From assembly GCA_965112735.1 (NCBI GenBank), contig OZ218950.1:6820001-6884000 (forward strand): a stretch of DNA of 64,000 nt, read 5' to 3'. The notes beneath the pieces are model-generated. The model had not been told where the DNA came from. It saw only the letters and a list, made by a program, of their open reading frames with translations, and searched no databases. This stretch comes from Phaeosaccion multiseriatum. Lineage: Eukaryota; Protista; Ochrophyta, other classes. A program made the translations under genes and the position numbers. This document shows positions 13,001 through 24,237 of the stretch, one piece after another (position 1 is the first letter of the stretch; the number at the start of each line of letters is the position of its first letter).

Positions 13001-14370
13001 AGCTGTCTGTCTTTGAATCGCTCTTATCATCCTTCTTGGACCAGCTGGCTCCGAGTCGCCGCTCGGATTTATCGCTCTTCTTTCTGCTGGTCTTTGTTTT
13101 GCTCTTTTTGCCGCCTGATGAGGGGAGGAGCGAGTCAAAAGGAAACAATTTGTGTGTAAGGATGGAGAGAGAGAGAGAGGAGGGAGCGCGTGAACGCAAG
13201 TGCAGTGTGTGCAGAGCGAGGGTAGAGTAAGAGGGGGGGGGGGGGGGCGGGTGCGTGAATGAGAGAAGCAAGGAACTTGCTTGACCGAGCGCGCGAGCGG
13301 CCGAGCGGAGCGAGTAGTACACAGGCCCAAGATGATGACCGAAATAGCAGGACAAGAAGCAGCACAGAAGAAACTCATGGCCGACGACAACTCACCTCCC
13401 TTGGAGCCACGGCCACCGCAGTAGGCCGTGGCTGTATAGCAAGTCTCTCCGTAGGCAGCGCACTGGGCAATGCACTCGTCGGGTACGCACATGGCGGAGG
13501 GGGTGGGGCTGGCCATCCACTTCTTCTTGGAATCGTTGCTCCATGATGACTTGTCCTTGGAATCTGATGAAAGGGAGTGGAGAGGGTGAGTGGGCAGTTG
13601 TGAGTGTGTAGTGGAGAGATGAGGGAGGAGAGGAGGAGAGAGCGAGCAGTCGTCAGGGTAGAATGAAGCGACGAATAGCTACAGCTGGACAGCTGGATAA
13701 GAGAACAAAGCCGAGACCGCCATGTATCCAGCTCTGCAGCCGATAGAGCTGTCCACCACAATCAATCTGCCACAACTCACCCGATTTTTTGCCTGGGGTC
13801 TTGGTGCTCTTCTTGGAATCGTTGTTCCATGATGACTTCTTGTCCTTGGAATCTGATAAAAGGGAGTGTGGAGAGGGTGAGTGGGCAGTTGTGGCTGAGC
13901 GTGTCGGCCCGTCGCTCGTGATGGCTGAGACGGGGAGGGAGTACTACTAGAGCAGGCAGGGAGCGAGCAGAGCAGAGCAGAGTCGAGCAGAGCAGAGCAG
14001 AGTGGCTGGGGGAGAATAGAGCAGAGTGGGGGGGAGTAGAGCAGAATGAAACGACAAGTACAAAGAAGAAGAAGCTGCCATGCATGGCTGAGATGTGCGT
14101 CCACAATCAGTCTGCCACAACAAGAAGCAACTCACCCGACTTTTTGCTGGTAGTAGTAGTCTTCGACATGCTCCACTTATCATCACTCGTGCTATCGTTC
14201 CACGTTGTCTTGCCGTCTTTGGTGCCTTTATCCGACTTTTTGTCGGTGGACTTATTCTTGCTCTTCGTGGACAATCCCCGCCAGAAGTTGTAGGCTCCGG
14301 CCGGATCGACGAGGAGGAGAGCGAGGACGACCGCCGTGGAGGCGCGCCTGACTGTCATCATGGTCAACAT
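10020..14370 (-). CDS. Secreted protein: signal peptide, RxL/KxxK Lys-Ser-rich region, Cys-rich and PT-rich linkers, 17 tandem disintegrin-like modules, C-terminal globular domain; exons 14370-14136, 13852-13781, 13563-13396, 13114-12692, 12442-10020
   Basis: All four introns are GT-AG, phase 1, and give one open frame. Hydrophobic N-terminus (TAVVLALLLVDPAGA). CGNGVVELGEDC is followed by repeated CRxxxxxCDxxExCxGxSxxCPxD, the C-terminal half of an ADAM-type disintegrin domain. Confidence 0.85.
10827..12266 (-). repeat. Coding tandem repeat: 15 near-identical 96-bp (32-aa) units, followed by 2 diverged units to about 10660
   Basis: Unit consensus CRPK[A/D]GLCD[A/V]AE[T/S]CDG[T/A]SA[D/G]CPADVF[V/A]A[G/D]NVE, counted from the translation. 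Confidence 0.97.
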
Positions 14371-14423
14371 AAAAGAGAGAGGAGGATGCACTTGCTTGGT
14401 AAATGAATGCGCAGGAGGGGCAT

Positions 14424-14577
14424 TTAGGTAAGGGTTTTGAGTGTGGTTTCGTGTCGAGAGCAGCATGTGGTCGCGACATTAGCTAAGGCTTATTCGTGTC
14501 GAGAGCACGAGGGGTGGTCTCAAGTCGGAGCCACGACTGAGCGCAGGGGACAGGCTGGCGTACACGCGGATTCGAGC
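14424..14577 (+). repeat. Left inverted repeat of the KDZ element (154 bp), containing two copies of TTCGTGTCGAGAGCA (14448, 14493)
   Basis: Reverse complement of 24083-24237 with only about 6 differences. Confidence 0.95.
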
Positions 14578-14776
14578 ATCCACCATCCCCCCCCCACCCA
14601 CATAGTACTCCTTGAGAGCTCACTCGGTGTCCAGAACGATGACAGACTCGGGGCTACGGCGGTCAGAGAGAAGCGGAACGCAAGCAAGTTTAGGACGGTA
14701 TGTTCGCAACGCCGGTCCCCCCACTCAAAGGAAGGAACCTTCTCCAACGTCTGTCGCACCCCGTAATCCAAACAGC

Positions 14777-16410
14777 ATGGGAAAGGGAAAGGGAAAGGGA
14801 AAGGGAGGGAAAGGAGAACTCGCTGCGAGAGGAGGAGGAGGAGGAGGAGGAAGGAACGGAGGGGCTCCGTCACCGCCGGTAGACACAACAGCGAGGACAG
14901 GAGCGGGAAGGACACCGGCATCCGCAAGTCCGACACCAGGAGGAGCGGGAGGATTGGGAGGACCTCTGTCTGATTTCACAGATTTCACAGCATCTCCAGG
15001 AGGCGAACCGGGGACGGCGGCCGCTCCGTCATCATTACCACCACCCGCGGTAGCACCAGCGACAACAGAGGTTGAGGGAGTAGCGGGAGCAGCGATTTTT
15101 GGAGGAGAAGGGGGCGCCGCAGCAGCATCAAGGATTCCTTCTCCACCAACTACAATTGGAACAGAGGGCCTTGCGGAGGGGGCTTTGGAAAGGGGTAGCG
15201 GAGAGAGTCAAGCCGAACTTAGCAAAGCCCAGGAACATGCTGCTGCCACTGCTGCTGCCACTGCTGCCTCTGCTACTGCCTCCGGATCCGTGCTCCGAGA
15301 GGCAGGGAAGTCCACGTCAGCACTCCCTAGTGGCGCGAGAGGAGGAAAAACTAAGAGGTGAGAAGGGCCTGCCTTGTCTCGTCTTTAAAGCTTCATTCTG
15401 TCCGCCTGCTGTAACGATTTCAACACGTCTCTTCCAACACCCCTGCGCAGAACGACGCAGAAGAAAATCCTTGGGCTCCTGAAAGCCAATGCAGTGTCAT
15501 CACAGGAGAGGGAGGCGTTAAAGAAGCAGTACAGAGGCAAAATGAACGCCGCTGCGGCCATGTTGGCGGCCTGCGGCGAGAAAATTGTTATCGTTGCGGC
15601 GGAAGACAGTGAGGTCCGAAAGATTGTGACTAACAATTTCCCGAATGGCAGCGTCCTGGCTACGGCTCTGCGAGACTCCCGTGTGAATTCCATCATCCGC
15701 GAAGCTGTGAACGATATTCTTCCGAGGCAAGTGCAAACGTCTACAGCTGTTCAAGCGTCCGAACCCAGGACCCCTGAAAAGATTGTGGAGGAGGACGTGT
15801 CAGTGAAAGAGCTGCGCAAGGTCTGTGCGGTCTTGATGAAGCGCCATGCAGGAGATGTTCTGCAGGGAAAAGTCGAACAGAAGAAGCAGGAAGCCGCGCA
15901 GAGGGGGGCAGGGGGACGGCAGGAGGCCGTGGCGGACCCTGGGACAGGGGGGCGGTCAGGGATGGTCTTCACCAGCTCAACGCGAAAGGCATCGCCGACA
16001 GCGGCCACAGGTACTGCATCGGAGCGACGCCGCAACCGAAGTATTGGCAAGGTGTGACCTACAACGGCAAAGCTATGGACTGGAAGGGATTTGGAGCCTT
16101 TCTCAAAGCAAAGCACTACGCGTGTTTGAGAATTCCCGAGAGCTTGGCGCACTCTGTGGTGGTTGCGTACACGAGGCACGTGTACGCAGCGGCGGCTGGA
16201 AGCAGCGGCGACAGCAACGGCTCAAACACCACCAGGGATCGCCAGAGGATCGGATCCGAAGCCGTCGAAGGCAGTCTGCATTCATTGATCAGAGAGGGCA
16301 ACAAAGACGTCGCGGAGGCCCCACTCGACAAGGGCAGCAAGAAGCGAAAGCGGGGAGAGGCGGAGGCAACACCACCAGTATCAGTACCACCAGTAATGAC
16401 TAATGTATGA
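14777..16410 (+). CDS. KDZ-element ORF2, unknown protein with a low-complexity Gly/Ala/Pro N-terminus and basic NLS-like patches; intron 15358-15450, apparent 2-nt frameshift at about 16052
   Basis: ATG 14777 lies about 200 bp inside the left repeat. A GT-AG phase-2 intron joins ORF 14612-15361 to 15494-16057 in frame. The GGTGTGACC dinucleotide slip links to ORF 16054-16410 (GKVTYNGKAMDW...SKKRKR). Confidence 0.55.
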
Positions 16411-16417
16411 TTTAGAT

Positions 16418-19400
16418 TTAAGTCTCTCCTGCCTCCTTCCTCCGCTCCGCCTCCTTCAGCAGCATCCGCGCGATCTCATTGCGCTTCTCCCCCATGTCTT
16501 CCTCCCGCACCTCCTCCTTGAGGGACTTGCCCTCATAGATGCACCTTGCAAAGGACACAGTAAAGACTCCGCAGTCGTATCCATTCTTCTGCCAGGGGGT
16601 CGTGTCGCTGCAAGTCGGCAGGGACTGCCATCCAACCATGTCCATGGGCGCTGCAGACAGGAGGAAGAAGGGGGGGGGGGGTGGTTAATGAGAGACAGAA
16701 GACACAGCGGTGAGCTTGCCCAGACACTTACTCTTGAGCTTATCCACGTGCTCGTCCTGCAGCCAAAGCATGATAGCGTTGCGTGCGAGGTCGCCTTTGC
16801 CCCACTTGCTGTCGTAGCACTGCACTACCTTCTTCTCCATGTCAATGACCACCAAATACCAGTGATGCATGTGAATGTTGACCGGCACAGTGACCTTGCC
16901 ACACTCGAAAACGTTTCCCCCCACCACCTTTTCGCCTTGTGTCCACCTCTTCACGTTCGCGTAGACGTACTGGTCCATGCTGAGGAACTTGTCGGTGAGC
17001 TTGTGGAGGAAGTGGGAGTTGAAGAAGTGGGTCGGGCGGCGTTCGCTGTCCAGCTCACACTTCGTCTTGTCGTCCTCTGCCATAAGGTCGAGGCAGAGAT
17101 TGATCACCTCGTCGTTCAGCCACGTGAAGGACAGCAGGCACCGTAGCGTGTTCCGCGTAATCTCGGCGTTGAAGAGCGTAAAGAGAATTTCGTCCCCCTG
17201 CCCACCGTGGAAGGCCCATTGTAGGGCGGCCTCGTCACCCTCTGGCGGCAGCCCCGCCGTGTTTGCCTCTGTAGGTCGCCCCCTCTTTCGCTTGCGACTC
17301 TGCCCCTCCCCCGCCCCTGCTGTGACTCCTGCTCCCCCCTCCCCGCCTCCTTCTGATGCTCCTGCTCCTTGCCCTCTCCCTTCTGATCTCTGTGCCTCTT
17401 CCTCTCCTTCTTGTACTGCCCCCCTGGGGTCTGTATCCTCGGATTTCTCTTCCTCTACCCCTTCGTCCTCCTGCACGACGCTGCCCACCGAATCGCCCCG
17501 CGGCGACGGTTGAGGCGCCTCACGATGGAGGCCTTGGCGGAGGCCCACAAGAAGAGGGCTGGAACTGGCCTCGCCAACCTGCTCCTGGACAGGGGTGCGG
17601 CGTGAGAGGAGTAAAAAGGATGGAGGGAGGAGAGGTGGGATGGTTTTCGAGTGAGACACCCAGACGAGGTCAGCCGAAGCCTCCAAAGCCAACCAGAAAC
17701 GAACATTCTCTTCCTCCGGGCTGATGGTCTCCATGTCGGGCATGGTGACCTGTAAAGGAGAGACACACACACACACACACACACAAACATACACACACAC
17801 ATGTATCACTTTGACAAGCAAGCCTGGAAGGGGGCCAGGGTAAAGCACCTACCGCTTCGATTGCTCCTCGTGAGCCTTCCGCGGCCATGTCCTTCAGTCT
17901 CTTCTCCGCGACCATGTGTAAGAAAACGTTAACGTACATCTGAGCTGTGCGCGACGACATGTGCGCCAACTGGGAGTCCACAGGCAAGGCAGGCAGGCAC
18001 AAAAAGCAAGGAAGTGAGGAGAAAAACTTGAGTGAGCTGTAGCCCGAGACTCTCCTTCACCTGCGTGGCGATTTTGCGAACCTCCTTGTTGTTCTGCTCC
18101 GCCGCTTGGGTGTCAAGGCTTCGCAAGACGCTGAGGAAGAGACGACAATCACGACGGGGAAGGCGGCTGAGTTCTTACACTGTGGGGAAACTGAATTGCC
18201 CAGGGGAATGTACCCAATTCAAGGGTATGGGCAGGGGGCAGGAGAGAGAGGGGGGGGGGGGACTTTACCTGTACTCTTCGAACAAGAGAGGCACATTCTT
18301 CTCGTACGCTGACCGTTTCATCAAACTCAAGATGCCGTAAAGGGTGTTGCAGGCCACATGGTTGGGCAAATGAAAGCGGTCCAGGCAAAACCTGATGCGA
18401 AAAAGTAGGCGCGGGTCCCGGTACAAGATGTACTTGTGCAGCTTACACACTGGGCCAGGAGGACGAGGAGAGGAGCAACGGAGAGCAACGGAGAGCAACG
18501 CAGAGCAACGGAGAGCAGAAGTTAGGCATTTCCTTGGCAACTGCTGCATCAACCCAGCACACTCTGTTCACCGCGGAGGCAGCAGAGGGGGTACGGACGC
18601 TGCCTGCCGCACTTCCAACCCTTTTCAGTGACACTGAAGGAAATTCCAATCCCTTCGGAGGCGAAGCGGTACAGGGTTGAGGCATCGCAGAGCACTGTAG
18701 AGGCACCAACAAAGCATGAACAGGGCGTCATACACACTCTGTATCACTTCAGAAGCACCAGGAATGAGTACGGGCATTCCCCCCCCCCCCGCCCCCCCAC
18801 AACCAAAAAAAGTCAGGCCGACTAAGTCACTGAATCAGCCCCCCTACGTGACCATGGTGGACCCTTGCCACAAACCCAGCGCGCATCGCTTGCCTCTGGT
18901 GAGGCGCACAAGGAAACATGGGCCTGACCAATCTATGTACCCTGCACCAGTGACTTCACAGGTGGTCTTGGCCCTCCCCCTCTGCGTCTCAGCTTGGGGA
19001 AGATCACCACCCCTGTTACGTGTCAGCCAAGCCGGAGGTATTTTCCCGAATCTCTTTGTCAGGAGCTCAGATAAAGGATCCTCTACAATCCTACCAACCC
19101 TCAAACATGCAGCAGTCCATTCACCTCCTCTGCTTGGGCCAAACCGGCACCCAGTTTGCTCGTGCCGCCAAAGTAAGTCACTGAATCACCCCCCCTGGGT
19201 CACCATGGTGGACGCTTGGCCGAAATCTAGCGCGGATCGTTTGAGTTTGGTCAGGGCTACAAGGAAACCTAATCAGACATTGGGGTAGAAACCCACAAGG
19301 TTGACTTCACAGGTTAGCGTAGCAAATCCCTCTCATTTCTGCCCCAAAACAGGGAAAACGACCACCTGCACAGCGTTTAAGCCGGCATGACCAACTTGCC

Positions 19401-22400
19401 CCACTATTTTTGGTCTGAAGCTGCCCCTACGCATCCTCTACCCCTCTGCAGATTACTAAGCGGTGCCGCAGTCACTGATCCCCTTCCCTCCACCCAAACA
19501 CTTTCGATTCTGCTCATGTCTGACCCTGTCAGGCACCGAATCACGCCCGAGGGGGGTCACACGACAGGCACAAGTGACCAGGACTTTCTCGCAGGCCCAG
19601 CTTGACCCCTCCACACTTTTCCGACTCTTCTGGAGATGTCAGAAAGGTGTGAAGAGTATACTAGCAGTGCTGCGGAACCGTCCTTACTTGTCCCCGCGGC
19701 CTTTGAGGAGTCGAGAGGGAGTACAGGGGGCATCGGCAGCATCGCCGGACCCTCAGTACTCCTCACCGAACCCTCTAAAGACCTCGGGACGTCATAAACA
19801 CTGTACCAGCAGCACTACCAGACTCTGCACACTCCTCCCCGACCCTCGAGAGGGCCTTCACCGCTTCAAAGGCTCCACACTCATTCCCCACAAACAACCC
19901 TCAGACGCGTTAAGCTCACCGTTGTCGTAGATCCATAGCACTCTCGCGTGCTTGGAACTTGAAGCACTCCAGCGTCGAATCAGCTCAAAAGGGTACGCCA
20001 CCGACTCTGGCCTCGGCATGAACAGCTGGGCGAGCGGGAACCGATGAGAACAGAAGCATAAGAACAAGCCCGACGACATGTTGGCACAGCTGCTGCTGTT
20101 CTTGCAGCACAAGCCGTCGTCCTTGTCCACTCCGGTCTTGTTTGAGGAAGGCCCGCGGTTCTCCTCATCCTGTGCGTAGGGTCGCCTCTCCGGTCTCTGC
20201 GGTACAAGAGACGAGAAAAAGGCCCAACAACACACAAAGGCGAGAGGACAAGTAGGCGAGTTCAGGGTTGAGCCAGAAGGGCGGGGGGGAATGGTTCGAA
20301 GGCAGGAGTACGGAGCGCATGGTTTTGGACATGAGAGAAAGGAGGTGGGTGGGTGGGGGGGGGGTAGCGGGGGGTAGCGGGAGGGGAAAGGGGGGCGGAA
20401 AGCTCAGCAAGGTCACAAAGCGGGGAAGCCATGATCCCATGCGGTGCTGTCCACTTACACTTTCGAAGGTCTGCGAGCAGCAGAATCCTTGTGCCCAGTC
20501 ATCGTCCTTCGACACGACCTTCGTCTCCAAGGGGCGGTGCAGTCCCTTGTCCGCCTCGTCCATCTCCTTACACACGACTATGAAGCGGTTTCGCACCTCA
20601 TTCCTACGCTGAACATTCCCCAGAAGGAAAGTGGGTGTCTTGTGCGCAAAACACTCCTCGTGCACGAAGTGGAGCCTTCCCTCTTCAACGGCCTTCTCGT
20701 GGCGCTCCCTCAGGAGCCTATACTCCATCACTGCCATGGCAAAAAGAGGGTAGTGCCTCCAGAGGCGAGTCAAGAGCTCCGGGGGCACTCCTCCATGTCC
20801 TTCTCCAGCCAATCTGCAAGCCAAAGGTGTGTCCCGAAAATGTACCTGCCGGTGGGTGCACCGAGGCCCAGAGGAGGGACAGTTGCAGCTCAGTACAGAC
20901 AAAAAAACTGCACAGGCCGGAGCGACTTGTCCAGGCCTTCTCTGTCTCAAGGACGCACCTCTCTACCTCCTTCGAGTCCAGCACGTGCACATCGTCCTCG
21001 TGCCCCGCGTCTGGTGAGACTCCTTCGTCCTCGTCAAAAGGCCCCGTCAAAGCTGTTGAAAGTACGTCCTCCTCAACGCCTTCGACTCCTCCACTGAGCC
21101 CCGGGAGAACGTCCGACGCTCCATCCGCCGCAAAGTTCCTGCACAAGTATCTCCAGAGGGGAGGGAACACTTCCGCAGTCGGGACTCCAACGGCGGGACT
21201 TTGAATGGGAAGGGATTGAGGGGGGCAGGGGGGATATCCAGGGGGGGGGGGGCAGAGCGTTTGGACGATTGGAAGTGTAGGGTGCGGTGCAGAGTGAAAG
21301 AAGAGTTCATGATGGTGGCCTTGCCTCACCTCACGGACTCGGCCTTGTAGCCCGCGAAAGCGTCAAACCACATGAAACAGTCCTTCACCCATTCCGGTAC
21401 TTCACCGCCATTTTGCAGCTCGGTAAGCTCCTCTCTTGTCAGCTGGGGACGATGCTTCCCCTCCTTGCCGCCACTCGTTTTCACTCGTGCATACCTCAGC
21501 AGGGCACTGCGTGTAGGCTGCTGACGAGAACCAAGCTCCGTGATATCCCCGAAGTGTAAGCGCTTCAGCGGGGGGAGGTCCTTTCTGACTGAGTTGGTCG
21601 GTTCAGCCAGATTCATCAACTTTCGTTGAAGGCCTGAATCAGTGAGTGCACATGTCGCAAGCATACAGAGGCATGGGTGTGGGACGAGGGACGACGGACG
21701 TGATGCATACACGAAGTGACGTAGCGAAATCAAGGGGAGAAGGGGAAAGAAAGGGGGGGGGGGAGAAGAGGGCGGGGGGGCATATACGGAGGGAGGATCG
21801 GATCGAGGGAGGCAAGGGGTAAGGCCCCTATGGGGAGGAAGGAATACATAGGAGAGCAGCTGATACCGCGAGAGAGTAGGAGGCAGTAGGAGGGGGCAGA
21901 GAAGAAGCAGGGGCGGTGTGTAGGCAGCGAGGGAGGACGCGAACGAGGTAGGCAGGAGGGTAGGGGGGTAGGGGCGGGGGCGGTGGACAGAGAGTGAAGA
22001 GGAGGGGGTACGCAGGGGGACGGGTGGGTGGGGGGGGGGGAGCGGTGGGCAGGGAGGGAAGGGGGGGAAGAAGGGAGAACAGAGGCAGGCCAGGCGCGGG
22101 TGGGGGGGCGGGGGGAGGGAGGAAGGGAGAGAGGGATGGGAGGGATGGGAGGGATGGGAGGGATGGGAGGGAGGTAGGGAGGCTGCTCAACACTTACCCT
22201 CCATGAGACCGTCGACAACGAATGCCCACGGGTCCAGACCGTAAATAGGGCAACACGGCCAGGGGTCCAGGACGCCCTCCATATTGAGGAGGAAGGCCAT
22301 GAGGCCCTGCCTGCCCCGCGCTCTCAGAGTCTCCGCAGGGATCGTGAGCACATCTGTCAAGCCAAGTCTAGATGCTCCGTCCACGCAGCATCCTGTCCAG

Positions 22401-23899
22401 TTGGCTGCTGTAGTACCGTTGCGTCGGATTTGGTCGAGAAAGTCGAAGCCAGCTTTGTAAGCCAAGACTGTGGTATACGTGCTCCGAAAGAGGGCATGGC
22501 TGGAGGTATCCGCCAGGGCGATGTGGCCGCACCTGGGGCATTGATAGTCCACGAGCACGAGGTAGTGCGGGAAGACCGCTTCCTGTGTCCAAAGACAAGG
22601 TTGACTGTGGATGGCAGTCATGCTCGAGCCACAGCTGGCGCATATCGAAAGTGCTTCAATCCGCTGTGGGTAGGGCTTGCCGTAAAAGTAGGCCTGCATC
22701 AGCTCCACTATCTCCGAGTTGGCCCCCCTGTCGCCCTAACCATGCCACTTGACGTTGGTGCAGCGATATTGCGTCCCCATTTGTTATAGTCTCCACCATC
22801 TCTTGAATATTGCGCGTCGGCCTGTGGTGCGGCGTGTCCGAGTACTCGGGCGCCGCCGCTCTGGGTTCGTCCGAGTGTAACTCCTCCCAAGCGATGCCAT
22901 ACATGTCGTCGCCCCCCCCCCCCCAAAGTCTCCTGCCCCATCGTACACGTCTTCACTCCCTACGTCTTGAAAGAAGCCGTCCTCCCCTTCCCCCCTGTCC
23001 CCACAGCCCCCGCCCCCTCCGGAGGTGGGAAGAAGGGCGTCCCGTGACACGAGATGCGCAGCAATCTCGCACTCCCCTTGCTGGCACTCCATGCCCAGCA
23101 GACTCAGACAAGTGCCACAGGCGGGACACAAATTGCGACTGCAGAGCTCGCCACAAAGTGACTGGAAAAGTAAACGACAGCGAGCGACAGGGGATTCAGG
23201 GGGGGGGGTGTGGAGGTCAAGTGAGACCAAATCGAAGCGAAAGCGAGCTGTGTCAGACTTTTCGTCAATAGCTCCACTCCCTACCCATCGTACCTTATGA
23301 CCCACGCACTCCAAGCCTTCACGCACTGGTTCAGGAAGCTGTGCGCATCGCTCACTCCAGGAGGAAGATACGTCCCACAAGAGGGTGCTCTCGGGGAGGG
23401 GTGAAGAGAGCAGTGAGGAGGCGAGGAACTTGGCGCAACAACTCTCGGCACTGTCGATTCTTACAGCAGGGGCGGTCTCCTGGATGGACAATGAGTGCCG
23501 GCGACGGAAGGCAGTCTTGTGTGCACCGAGTCCGTGCAGCTCTCCACAGTGCAGATGGCATAACCGGTGCAAACATTCAGAGCTGCTTGGCAGCACGGAA
23601 CCATTCCACCCCTCAATGCAGTTACCAGGATGAGGACACATACTGTTGAAGACCTTGCGTTGGCCCTCAAGTGTGATACCAGACAGGGACAGCTTCGCTT
23701 TCCGCAATGTTTCTAACAATGCCTGAAAGATCAGCCATTCCTCATCAATCGCTCGTTCGGCAAACGTGTACTCGAGGCCTACGGTACTCTCAACTGCAGC
23801 ACACTCATCGTACCGTCGCTGGAGTCTATCGCCCGAAGCGCTGAGGTCGTCGAAGAGCCCGAGCATATCTCCAGTACTCTCTGCACTCGCAACAGGCAT
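16418..23899 (-). CDS. Multi-exon KDZ transposase fused to a C-terminal Ulp1/SENP (C48) SUMO protease
   Basis: Cys-cluster region (CASCG...CPRCG...CCPIYGLDPWAFVVDG), then RRPY..D...C.K....GLFLCFCSH...MPRPES, WIYDN|VCKLHKYILYRDP...LDRFHLPNHVAC and DTQAAEQNN. These give the KDZ D-D-E triad and C/H motifs. Ulp1 motifs are WLNDEVIN, FFNSHF, VPVNIHMHHW, YDS and QKNGYDCGVF. Most splice junctions were traced in frame, but the donor near 20925 is unresolved. Two frameshifts fall in G homopolymers (about 22912-22924 and 22723-22728). Confidence 0.88.
18823..19520. repeat. Diverged tandem duplication of about 351 bp inside the 1470-bp transposase intron (18450-19919)
   Basis: TAAGTCACTGAATCA..ACCATGGTGGAC..ACAAGGAAAC..TGACTTCACAGGT occurs at 18823-18963 and again at 19174-19314. 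Confidence 0.85.
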
Positions 23900-24082
23900 G
23901 GTGACGTGTGTAACTGTCTCTCACCTTGTTTCCCACCCTGAAAGGGCGCTGAAGTCTTAACGTTTGAGGACGTAAGAGCAGCCCAGTAGAGAGTGGGAAA
24001 GACAAGCAGAGGAGGGAAAAGGTCGTGTCATTACCACGCAGTGCGAAGAGGAGATCCCGAGAAGATCCAGTGTGCCCGTGCG

Positions 24083-24237
24083 GCTCGAATCCGCGTGTAC
24101 GCCAGCCTGTCCCCTGCGCTCAGTCGTGGCTCCGACTCGAGACCACCCCTCGTGCTCTCGACACGAATAAGCCTTAGGTCATGTCGCGACCACATGCTGC
24201 TCTCGACACGAAACCACACTCAAAACACCCTACCTAA
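24083..24237 (-). repeat. Right inverted repeat of the KDZ element (155 bp)
   Basis: Reverse complement of 14424-14577. Confidence 0.95.

Follow-up and report, generated by a model that had tools for sequence, protein, structure and literature searches.

A 64,000-nt stretch of the genome of the stramenopile alga Phaeosaccion multiseriatum (contig OZ218950.1, positions 6,820,001 to 6,884,000), hereafter the window, contains an element of ~9.8 kb that is bounded at 14421-24237 by ~155-nt inverted repeats and carries two genes pointing inward from them. What kind of transposon is this, and where does its transposase belong? The element is a genuine, very recent cut-and-paste transposon. The family is best explained as a young, low-copy DNA transposon of the autonomous type, represented by six full copies of 9.81-9.83 kb, and its large minus-strand gene would, with moderate confidence, encode a very divergent transposase of the KDZ (Kyakuja/Dileera/Zisupton) superfamily. 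Coordinates of the copy in the window are given in window positions throughout.

Terminal repeats and subterminal motifs

Alignment of the two ends resolves ungapped repeat arms at 14434-14577 and 24083-24226 that are 98% complementary over 144 nt. Extended to the termini (14421-14577 versus 24083-24237), the arms differ by four mismatches and one indel, corresponding to about 96-97% identity. The left terminal inverted repeat (14421-14577, plus strand) starts with 5'-CATTTAGG, as do the left ends of all six copies. The right terminal inverted repeat (24083-24237, minus strand) is without the terminal ATC present in the other copies, all of which finish in ...CCTAAATC-3'. The element termini are 5'-CA...TC-3'.

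Each repeat contains two copies of a 15-nt motif, TTCGTGTCGAGAGCA, which occurs exactly four times in the window against a chance expectation of 0.2, with starts at 14448, 14493, 24153 and 24198. The first copy in the left repeat (14448-14462, plus strand) is a candidate transposase binding site and is followed by the second at 14493-14507 (plus strand); the right repeat holds its two at 24153-24167 and 24198-24212 (minus strand). An earlier sequence-only reading of this locus had described inverted repeats of 154/155 bp, ~96% identical, each with two copies of a 15-bp motif, and the alignment and motif count bear it out. Its description of two inward-pointing genes with stop codons 7 bp apart is likewise borne out, with a TGA at 16408-16410 on the plus strand and a TAA at 16420-16418 on the minus strand.

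Six nearly identical copies with 7-bp target-site duplications

A search of the 67-Mb assembly with the left repeat returned 13 full-length repeat matches and one 47-nt fragment. Pairing of the matches defines six elements, between 9,811 and 9,826 bp long: two are on contig 12 and one each on contigs 1, 2, 3 and 13. Their flanks are mutually unrelated. Direct duplications of 7 bp border four of the six copies: GGGGGGC, GCTGGCC and TTCTTCT are perfect, and GTACGAC/GTACGAG matches at 6/7 positions. The sequence-only reading had looked to the repeat as a means of collecting copies, ends and target-site duplications across the genome, and it yielded all three.

At the contig 2 copy, no target duplication is present at the flanks. 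The copy in the window is flanked by GGAGGGG on the left (14414-14420), a presumed target-site duplication copy at the position where other copies have their 7-bp duplications, and by CCTAA-GGG-CCCATG on the right, and retains no intact duplication. We infer that its right flank is the residue of a 7-nt deletion that took the terminal ATC plus GGAG.

The six copies differ at 72 alignment columns over 9.8 kb, mostly through changes in the length of G or C runs, and their pairwise substitution differences amount to 0.03-0.12% (~99.9% identity). The left repeat is 100% identical across all six, and every copy shows the same set of differences between its two repeats; these differences therefore predate the burst, and repeat identity cannot be used for dating. 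The sequence-only reading had called the element young by the high identity of its repeats: the age estimate stands on the ~99.9% identity between copies, and the argument from the repeats falls.

Two further pieces of the family lie on contig 2, namely a 615-bp right-end fragment that is 99.8% identical (L032:4927-5541, about 5.3766 Mb) and a 48-nt left-end scrap (L014:1500-1547, about 4.989 Mb). Both may be remnants of aborted or deleted insertions.

Predicted exons and motifs of the minus-strand gene

The minus-strand gene extends from an ATG at 23899 to the TAA at 16420-16418. Its exon models are predictions read from the DNA, and all homology searches were run exon by exon. Exon 1 (22199-23899) contains Cys/His-rich clusters and ends in C-x2-C-x9-VVDG, the proposed first catalytic Asp; in the contig 13 copy it is one open frame of 577 aa, and in the window copy it is split by indels at about 22721 and 22911. 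An exon running from LQRKLMNL to FAGYKAE (21338-21631) is followed by one ending in CCSQTF...QHRMG (20435-20838), whose frame is shifted with respect to the contig 13 copy, and by one carrying G-x5-C-x-H, PE and WIYDN, the proposed second Asp (19920-20169).

A 1.47-kb GT-AG intron (18451-19919), with its donor G|GTGAG at 19919 and its acceptor CAG| at 18453-18451, joins WIYDN in phase to VCKLHKY...FHLPNHVAC. The exon that starts with VCKLHKY (18346-18450) carries the H-x3-H-x2-C motif in FHLPNHVAC. Short exons at 17922-18120, assigned at motif level only, hold the proposed third acidic residue in DTQAAEQNNK and a following helix-like stretch. Two Ulp1 exons complete the gene model. Within the intron lies a direct repeat of 95 nt, found only in element copies, whose two units (18823-18917 and 19174-19268) are 80% identical and lie 351 nt apart. 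A nested repeat inside the intron was considered and rejected, as the region is present only in the six copies.

Read in order, the motifs of the predicted protein are C-x2-C-x9-VVDG, CCSQTF, G-x5-C-x-H with PE, WIYDN-VC, FHLPNH-x2-C some 30 residues further on, and AEQ. The sequence-only reading had named VVDG, YDN and AEQ as the catalytic residues, and all three were found on the minus strand, at 22219-22208, about 19929, and within 18120-18070, respectively. In 360 kb of genome DNA scanned, the H-x3-H and hhYD patterns are confined to element copies, which shows that they are rare and says nothing about KDZ membership. A diverged relic on contig 12 (2985227-2986047) is 41-44% identical to two parts of the N-terminal exon, and no catalytic exons were detectable near it.

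Placing the transposase

The KDZ assignment was made because the anatomy of the element (size, repeat length and 7-bp duplication) and the order of its motifs point to this superfamily, without a significant profile match. KDZ elements of the Zisupton/Dileera type are large (about 9 kb or more) with long terminal inverted repeats, and the present copies measure 9.81-9.83 kb with repeats of about 155 nt. Kyakuja makes 7-bp duplications and has 5'-CA termini, and Zisupton and Dileera make duplications of 8 bp (PMC12730594); among the six copies here, three have perfect 7-bp duplications and one a 6/7 match. The order of the motifs in the minus-strand gene also agrees with the KDZ domain consensus, a lead and not a test; in generalised form the series reads C-x2-C...hhDG, CS.F, G-x5-C-x-H...E, hYD..C, FH.P.H..C some 30 residues on, and an acidic motif.

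Close in dimensions are the KDZ1-3 elements of Cryptococcus neoformans, with lengths of 9.2-11 kb, repeats of 139-241 bp and duplications of 4-8 bp (10.1101/2025.05.19.654958). The element resembles them in length, long terminal inverted repeats, duplication range, low copy number and recent mobility. It differs in that the Cryptococcus transposases match Pfam KDZ and CxC1, whereas the present one, searched exon by exon, matches neither; descriptions of the Cryptococcus elements mention neither a Ulp1 domain nor a second gene in convergent orientation. With Kyakuja of Agaricomycetes it shares the 7-bp duplication and the 5'-CA terminus (PMC12730594), whereas Kyakuja is without terminal inverted repeats and often carries a TET/JBP gene, which is absent here.

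A large multi-exon transposase gene, terminal inverted repeats, algal hosts that include stramenopiles and, in some families, accessory genes link the element to Zisupton of fish, nematodes and Chlamydomonas and to the KDZ elements of Ectocarpus. Zisupton genes are multi-exonic (PMC9297572). In the brown alga Ectocarpus, eight KDZ families account for 1.8% of the genome (PMC12477816), and Chlamydomonas has active ones, a Zisupton of 31.7 kb having excised in mutation-accumulation lines (10.1101/2022.05.23.493040). The latter two records weaken the view of the sequence-only reading that KDZ transposases are known mainly from fungi and animals and that this may be an undescribed stramenopile KDZ family. 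Zisupton makes 8-bp duplications compared with 7 bp here, and described algal elements are often much larger, at 15-31 kb; the likeness is one of anatomy.

Several observations weigh against a KDZ enzyme. Pfam scans covered all frames of at least 70 aa on both strands of the window and contig 13 copies, including trimmed exons at E≤10, and returned only Ulp1: no exon-bearing frame matches PF18758 or the CxC models. The Cys/His clusters of the 577-aa first exon match none of CxC1-CxC7; their only hits were generic zinc ribbons, all below threshold. Nothing was returned by word-based searches of the 182-aa and 577-aa frames, by sequence searches of the PDB or by two metagenome scans; a phmmer search with the 343-aa frame found no hit at E≤0.001 among 1.84 billion representative proteins; and an exact-protein lookup found no record. 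For these three frames, relatives among known KDZ proteins were thus not detectable. The sequence-only reading is upheld as to a genuine, recently active transposon with long repeats and two convergent genes; its KDZ label is not supported as it stood, since the hit to a KDZ hidden Markov model, whose absence it had named as a refutation, did not appear in exon-by-exon searches. Exon-wise searches are weak for a domain cut into at least five short exons, and a library of such size sets a 45-bit threshold, which leaves room for a KDZ enzyme.

The motifs themselves add to the doubt. With VVDG as the first Asp, the spacing to the second is about 360 residues, far above the usual, and the third acidic motif, AEQNN, is unlike the GE..ER.W of KDZ. 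The right terminus is TC as opposed to the TG of Kyakuja, and H(3-4)H is also a trait of CMC/Transib (PMC12730594). The exons and promoters are predicted from DNA only, and the fusion of Ulp1 to the transposase, as against a separate gene, is a predicted gene model. A six-frame PF18758 search of the genome gave no candidates and was uninformative, with controls equally silent. AlphaFold modelling of the 577-aa frame from the single sequence reached a mean predicted local distance difference test (pLDDT) score of 36, too poor for a fold search. Exonuclease-domain hits, followed as a route to a canonical KDZ element elsewhere in the genome, led only to a retrotransposon family. This abundant Ty3/gypsy-type family is represented by a single frame of 2,652 aa (L045:14-7969, contig 1, about 1.30 Mb) and about 30 or more further loci; in this frame, RNase H and the integrase zinc-binding/core domains are separated by a 3'-5' exonuclease domain (PF01612, E 1.2e-20).

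Alternative assignments

The same silence of the databases would be expected if the transposon is real and its transposase belongs to a new or unclassified DDE lineage instead of KDZ, a less likely alternative. C(2)C and H(3-4)H motifs such as those seen here are described for the CMCT clade (PMC12730594). No putative transposase exon has a profile or sequence match, the proposed spacing between the first two Asp residues is unusually long, and the Glu motif differs from that of KDZ. Set against this, size, repeat length and the 7-bp duplication closely fit known KDZ elements, exon-by-exon searches have little power for a domain spread over at least five exons, and YDxxC followed ~30 residues later by FHLPxH..C is the KDZ arrangement. 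It is unlikely that the transposase founds a deep, lineage-restricted DDE branch still active in this alga, be it a superfamily of its own or a major new clade of KDZ. Such a branch would have no detectable relative among the 1.84 billion proteins and would unite 7-bp duplications, long repeats with motifs, a SUMO protease derived from the host and insertion targeted to gene 5' ends.

The other candidates are unlikely even when Mutator-like, CMC, P and non-autonomous origins are taken together. In maize MuDR, terminal repeats of about 200 bp enclose two convergent genes that start near the repeats, the element prefers gene 5' ends and makes 9-bp duplications, and the transposase is of the MULE/IS256 type. 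Long repeats, convergent genes starting close to them and insertions near gene 5' ends are all found here, and plant KI-MULEs are known to have captured Ulp1, a domain also present in this element. Yet no exon matches MULE (PF10551), DBD_Tnp_Mut or SWIM at E≤10, the duplication is 7 bp and not 8-11 bp, and the second Asp is followed by H-x3-H instead of C-x2-H, which makes a Mutator-like element very unlikely. A further difference from MuDR is that the stop codons here lie only 7 bp apart. The MuDR-like architecture proposed by the sequence-only reading survives as a convergent layout; the likeness is one of layout only, with no MULE signature.

Membership of the CMC/EnSpm-Plavaka group or of the P superfamily is more improbable again. 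P elements make 7-8-bp duplications, in keeping with those observed, whereas CMC elements have 2-4-bp duplications and CAC.../TGT... termini (PMC12730594), compared with 7 bp and CATTTAGG...CCTAAATC here. Neither Transposase_21/24 nor THAP9-like models in Pfam gave a match, nor did MULE, hAT, CACTA, P and PIF models match any exon at E≤10, and phmmer against the PDB, including solved transposase structures, was empty. It is equally hard to credit that neither gene encodes a transposase and that the six copies form a gene-carrying, non-autonomous element mobilised in trans by an enzyme from another locus. In favour of this, neither gene showed homology to a transposase. However, outside the six copies and the two fragments the repeat sequence is absent from the assembly, and hence no partner element has the same ends; the large gene shows, in order, the Cys/His and acidic motifs that a DDE enzyme should have; and all six copies have kept the same 9.8-kb content. 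A very divergent KDZ-type transposase is the assignment that we retain.

Origin of the Ulp1 domain

The only significant family match in the element is Peptidase_C48/Ulp1 (PF02902): two exons score 57.7 and 35.4 bits, both above the cut-off of 20.7. The exon at 16688-17217 (minus strand; E 1.9e-15, profile positions 2-143) encodes the N-terminal part of the domain, with the triad His and Asp in HWYLVVID, and the C-terminal part lies in the last exon at 16418-16684 (minus strand; E 1.3e-8, profile positions 160-214), which contains the Q..DCG active-site Cys motif and the TAA at 16420-16418. The HWYLVVID stretch and the Cys motif, Q.NGYDCG, are intact, and His, Asp, Gln and Cys are all present. 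In the contig 13 copy the domain is matched at E 7.1e-16.

Its nearest relative is a single-copy frame of 482 aa on contig 5 (L056:1462-2907, about 1.95 Mb, minus strand) with 58% protein identity. The two are alignable as DNA, at 71.5% identity over 495 nt and 68% over 212 nt, and a non-homologous gap at the same place in both marks a common intron position. Outside this genome, the Ulp1 part matches only distant sentrin proteases at 33-35% identity in a word-based search. The domain was probably acquired at the DNA level from a cellular gene, or shares descent with one; acquisition as DNA is suggested because the intron position is common to the single-copy contig 5 gene.

The plus-strand gene

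The convergent plus-strand gene runs from an ATG at 14639 to the TGA at 16408-16410. Predicted exon 1 (14639-15357) encodes a basic, low-complexity N-terminus rich in Gly, Ala and Pro and ends at a GTGAG donor at 15358. A 92-nt, in-phase intron (15358-15449, GTGAG...CAG), read from the DNA, separates it from exon 2 (15450-16410), which holds the conserved region, a KKRKRG motif resembling a nuclear-localisation signal and the stop codon, and which is frameshifted near 15946 in the window copy.

No family match to the gene was obtained in the Pfam scans of the window and contig 13 copies. AlphaFold modelling of its frame together with its one paralogue gave a mean pLDDT of 41, too poor for a fold search. 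The product is best explained as a nuclear-looking accessory protein, with no fold assigned. The paralogue is a single-copy frame of 415 aa on contig 3 (L069:1207-2451, 1604270-1605514, minus strand), 28% identical over its full length (E 2e-29), with an acidic Glu run; both it and the plus-strand gene end in a KKRK-type basic motif. No recognisable element lies within 3.8 kb around the paralogue, which may represent a host progenitor, a domesticated copy or what is left of a sister element.

Coding state of the copies

The contig 13 copy (L027) is the most open of the six, with minus-strand frames of 577, 286, 343 and 387 aa and plus-strand frames of 251 and 340 aa. The 577-aa frame is broken into 378 and 182 aa in the window copy, where the 343-aa frame and the plus-strand 340-aa frame are also split; relative to the contig 13 copy, the frameshifts lie at about 22721, 22911, 20384 and 20780 in the minus-strand gene and at 15946 in the plus-strand gene. 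The window copy is probably immobile and non-coding, because it combines these frameshifts with the terminal deletion.

Homopolymer indels alter the reading frames between copies. Sites of difference, mostly in the length of G/C homopolymers, are at 15946, 16670-16672, 18250, 18778, 20384, 20780, 21240, 21753, 22030, 22061, 22721, 22911 and 23199. Such differences are either long-read assembly errors or truly unstable runs, and they determine which copies look intact.

Insertion sites at gene 5' ends

The left end of the window copy lies 52 bp upstream of an ATG at 14370 that opens the signal peptide of a secreted repeat gene. At the contig 13 copy, 32 bp separate the right end from the downstream start of a uroporphyrinogen decarboxylase gene (PF01208, E 2.7e-14; L013:1689-2285), and the contig 2 copy is located upstream of a lyase-family gene. 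At five of the six copies, an outward-pointing ATG frame of at least 80 aa starts 50-137 bp from the left end, and two of these frames are verified genes; by a rough post-hoc estimate, such an arrangement at five of six left ends would arise by chance in less than 1% of cases.

The secreted repeat gene (14107-14466, minus strand) has an upstream in-frame ATG at 14466, within the left repeat, and read-out transcripts could add an N-terminal extension to the protein. A composite element of 14.5 kb with this gene as its cargo was considered and rejected, as the left flanks of the other five copies differ. The N-terminus encoded by the uroporphyrinogen decarboxylase gene on contig 13 resembles a signal or transit peptide.

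Promoter geometry and a proposed transposition mechanism

The two start codons are situated 218 and 338 bp from the element ends; measured inward from where each repeat stops, the distances are 62 and 184 bp. From this proximity to the ends, both genes would have self-contained promoters in or right beside the repeats. A promoter in each repeat, as the sequence-only reading proposed, fits the geometry, and both genes would see nearly the same sequence. The stop codons are only 7 bp apart, and therefore the two mRNAs would overlap at their 3' ends; this overlap could provide antisense self-regulation.

In the mechanism that we propose, the large multi-exon minus-strand gene would encode the transposase. 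By binding the paired 15-nt motifs, this protein would pair the element ends; it would then cut the element out and insert it at a new site through a staggered cut of 7 bp. Preferred targets may be sites of open chromatin at gene 5' ends. The Ulp1 domain may remove SUMO from chromatin or repair factors, favouring transposition or resisting silencing.

Implications

Acquisition of SUMO proteases recurs in unrelated transposon groups, and the Ulp1 domain described here, with its intron position in common with a cellular gene, would be a clean example of a transposon acquiring one. The element remains unusual in combining a 7-bp duplication and long repeats with a Ulp1 domain whose origin can be traced, a second gene in convergent orientation and a transposase for which no relatives were detectable. 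Should the transposase truly have no relatives, the known range of eukaryotic DDE transposases would widen; should it be no more than a divergent KDZ enzyme, it would be one more family in a group already catalogued in brown and green algae. With six copies that are almost identical, at least one of which looks intact, the family is a candidate for an active transposon in a stramenopile alga that has been little studied; it could be developed for insertional mutagenesis, and it marks ongoing genome change at gene promoters.

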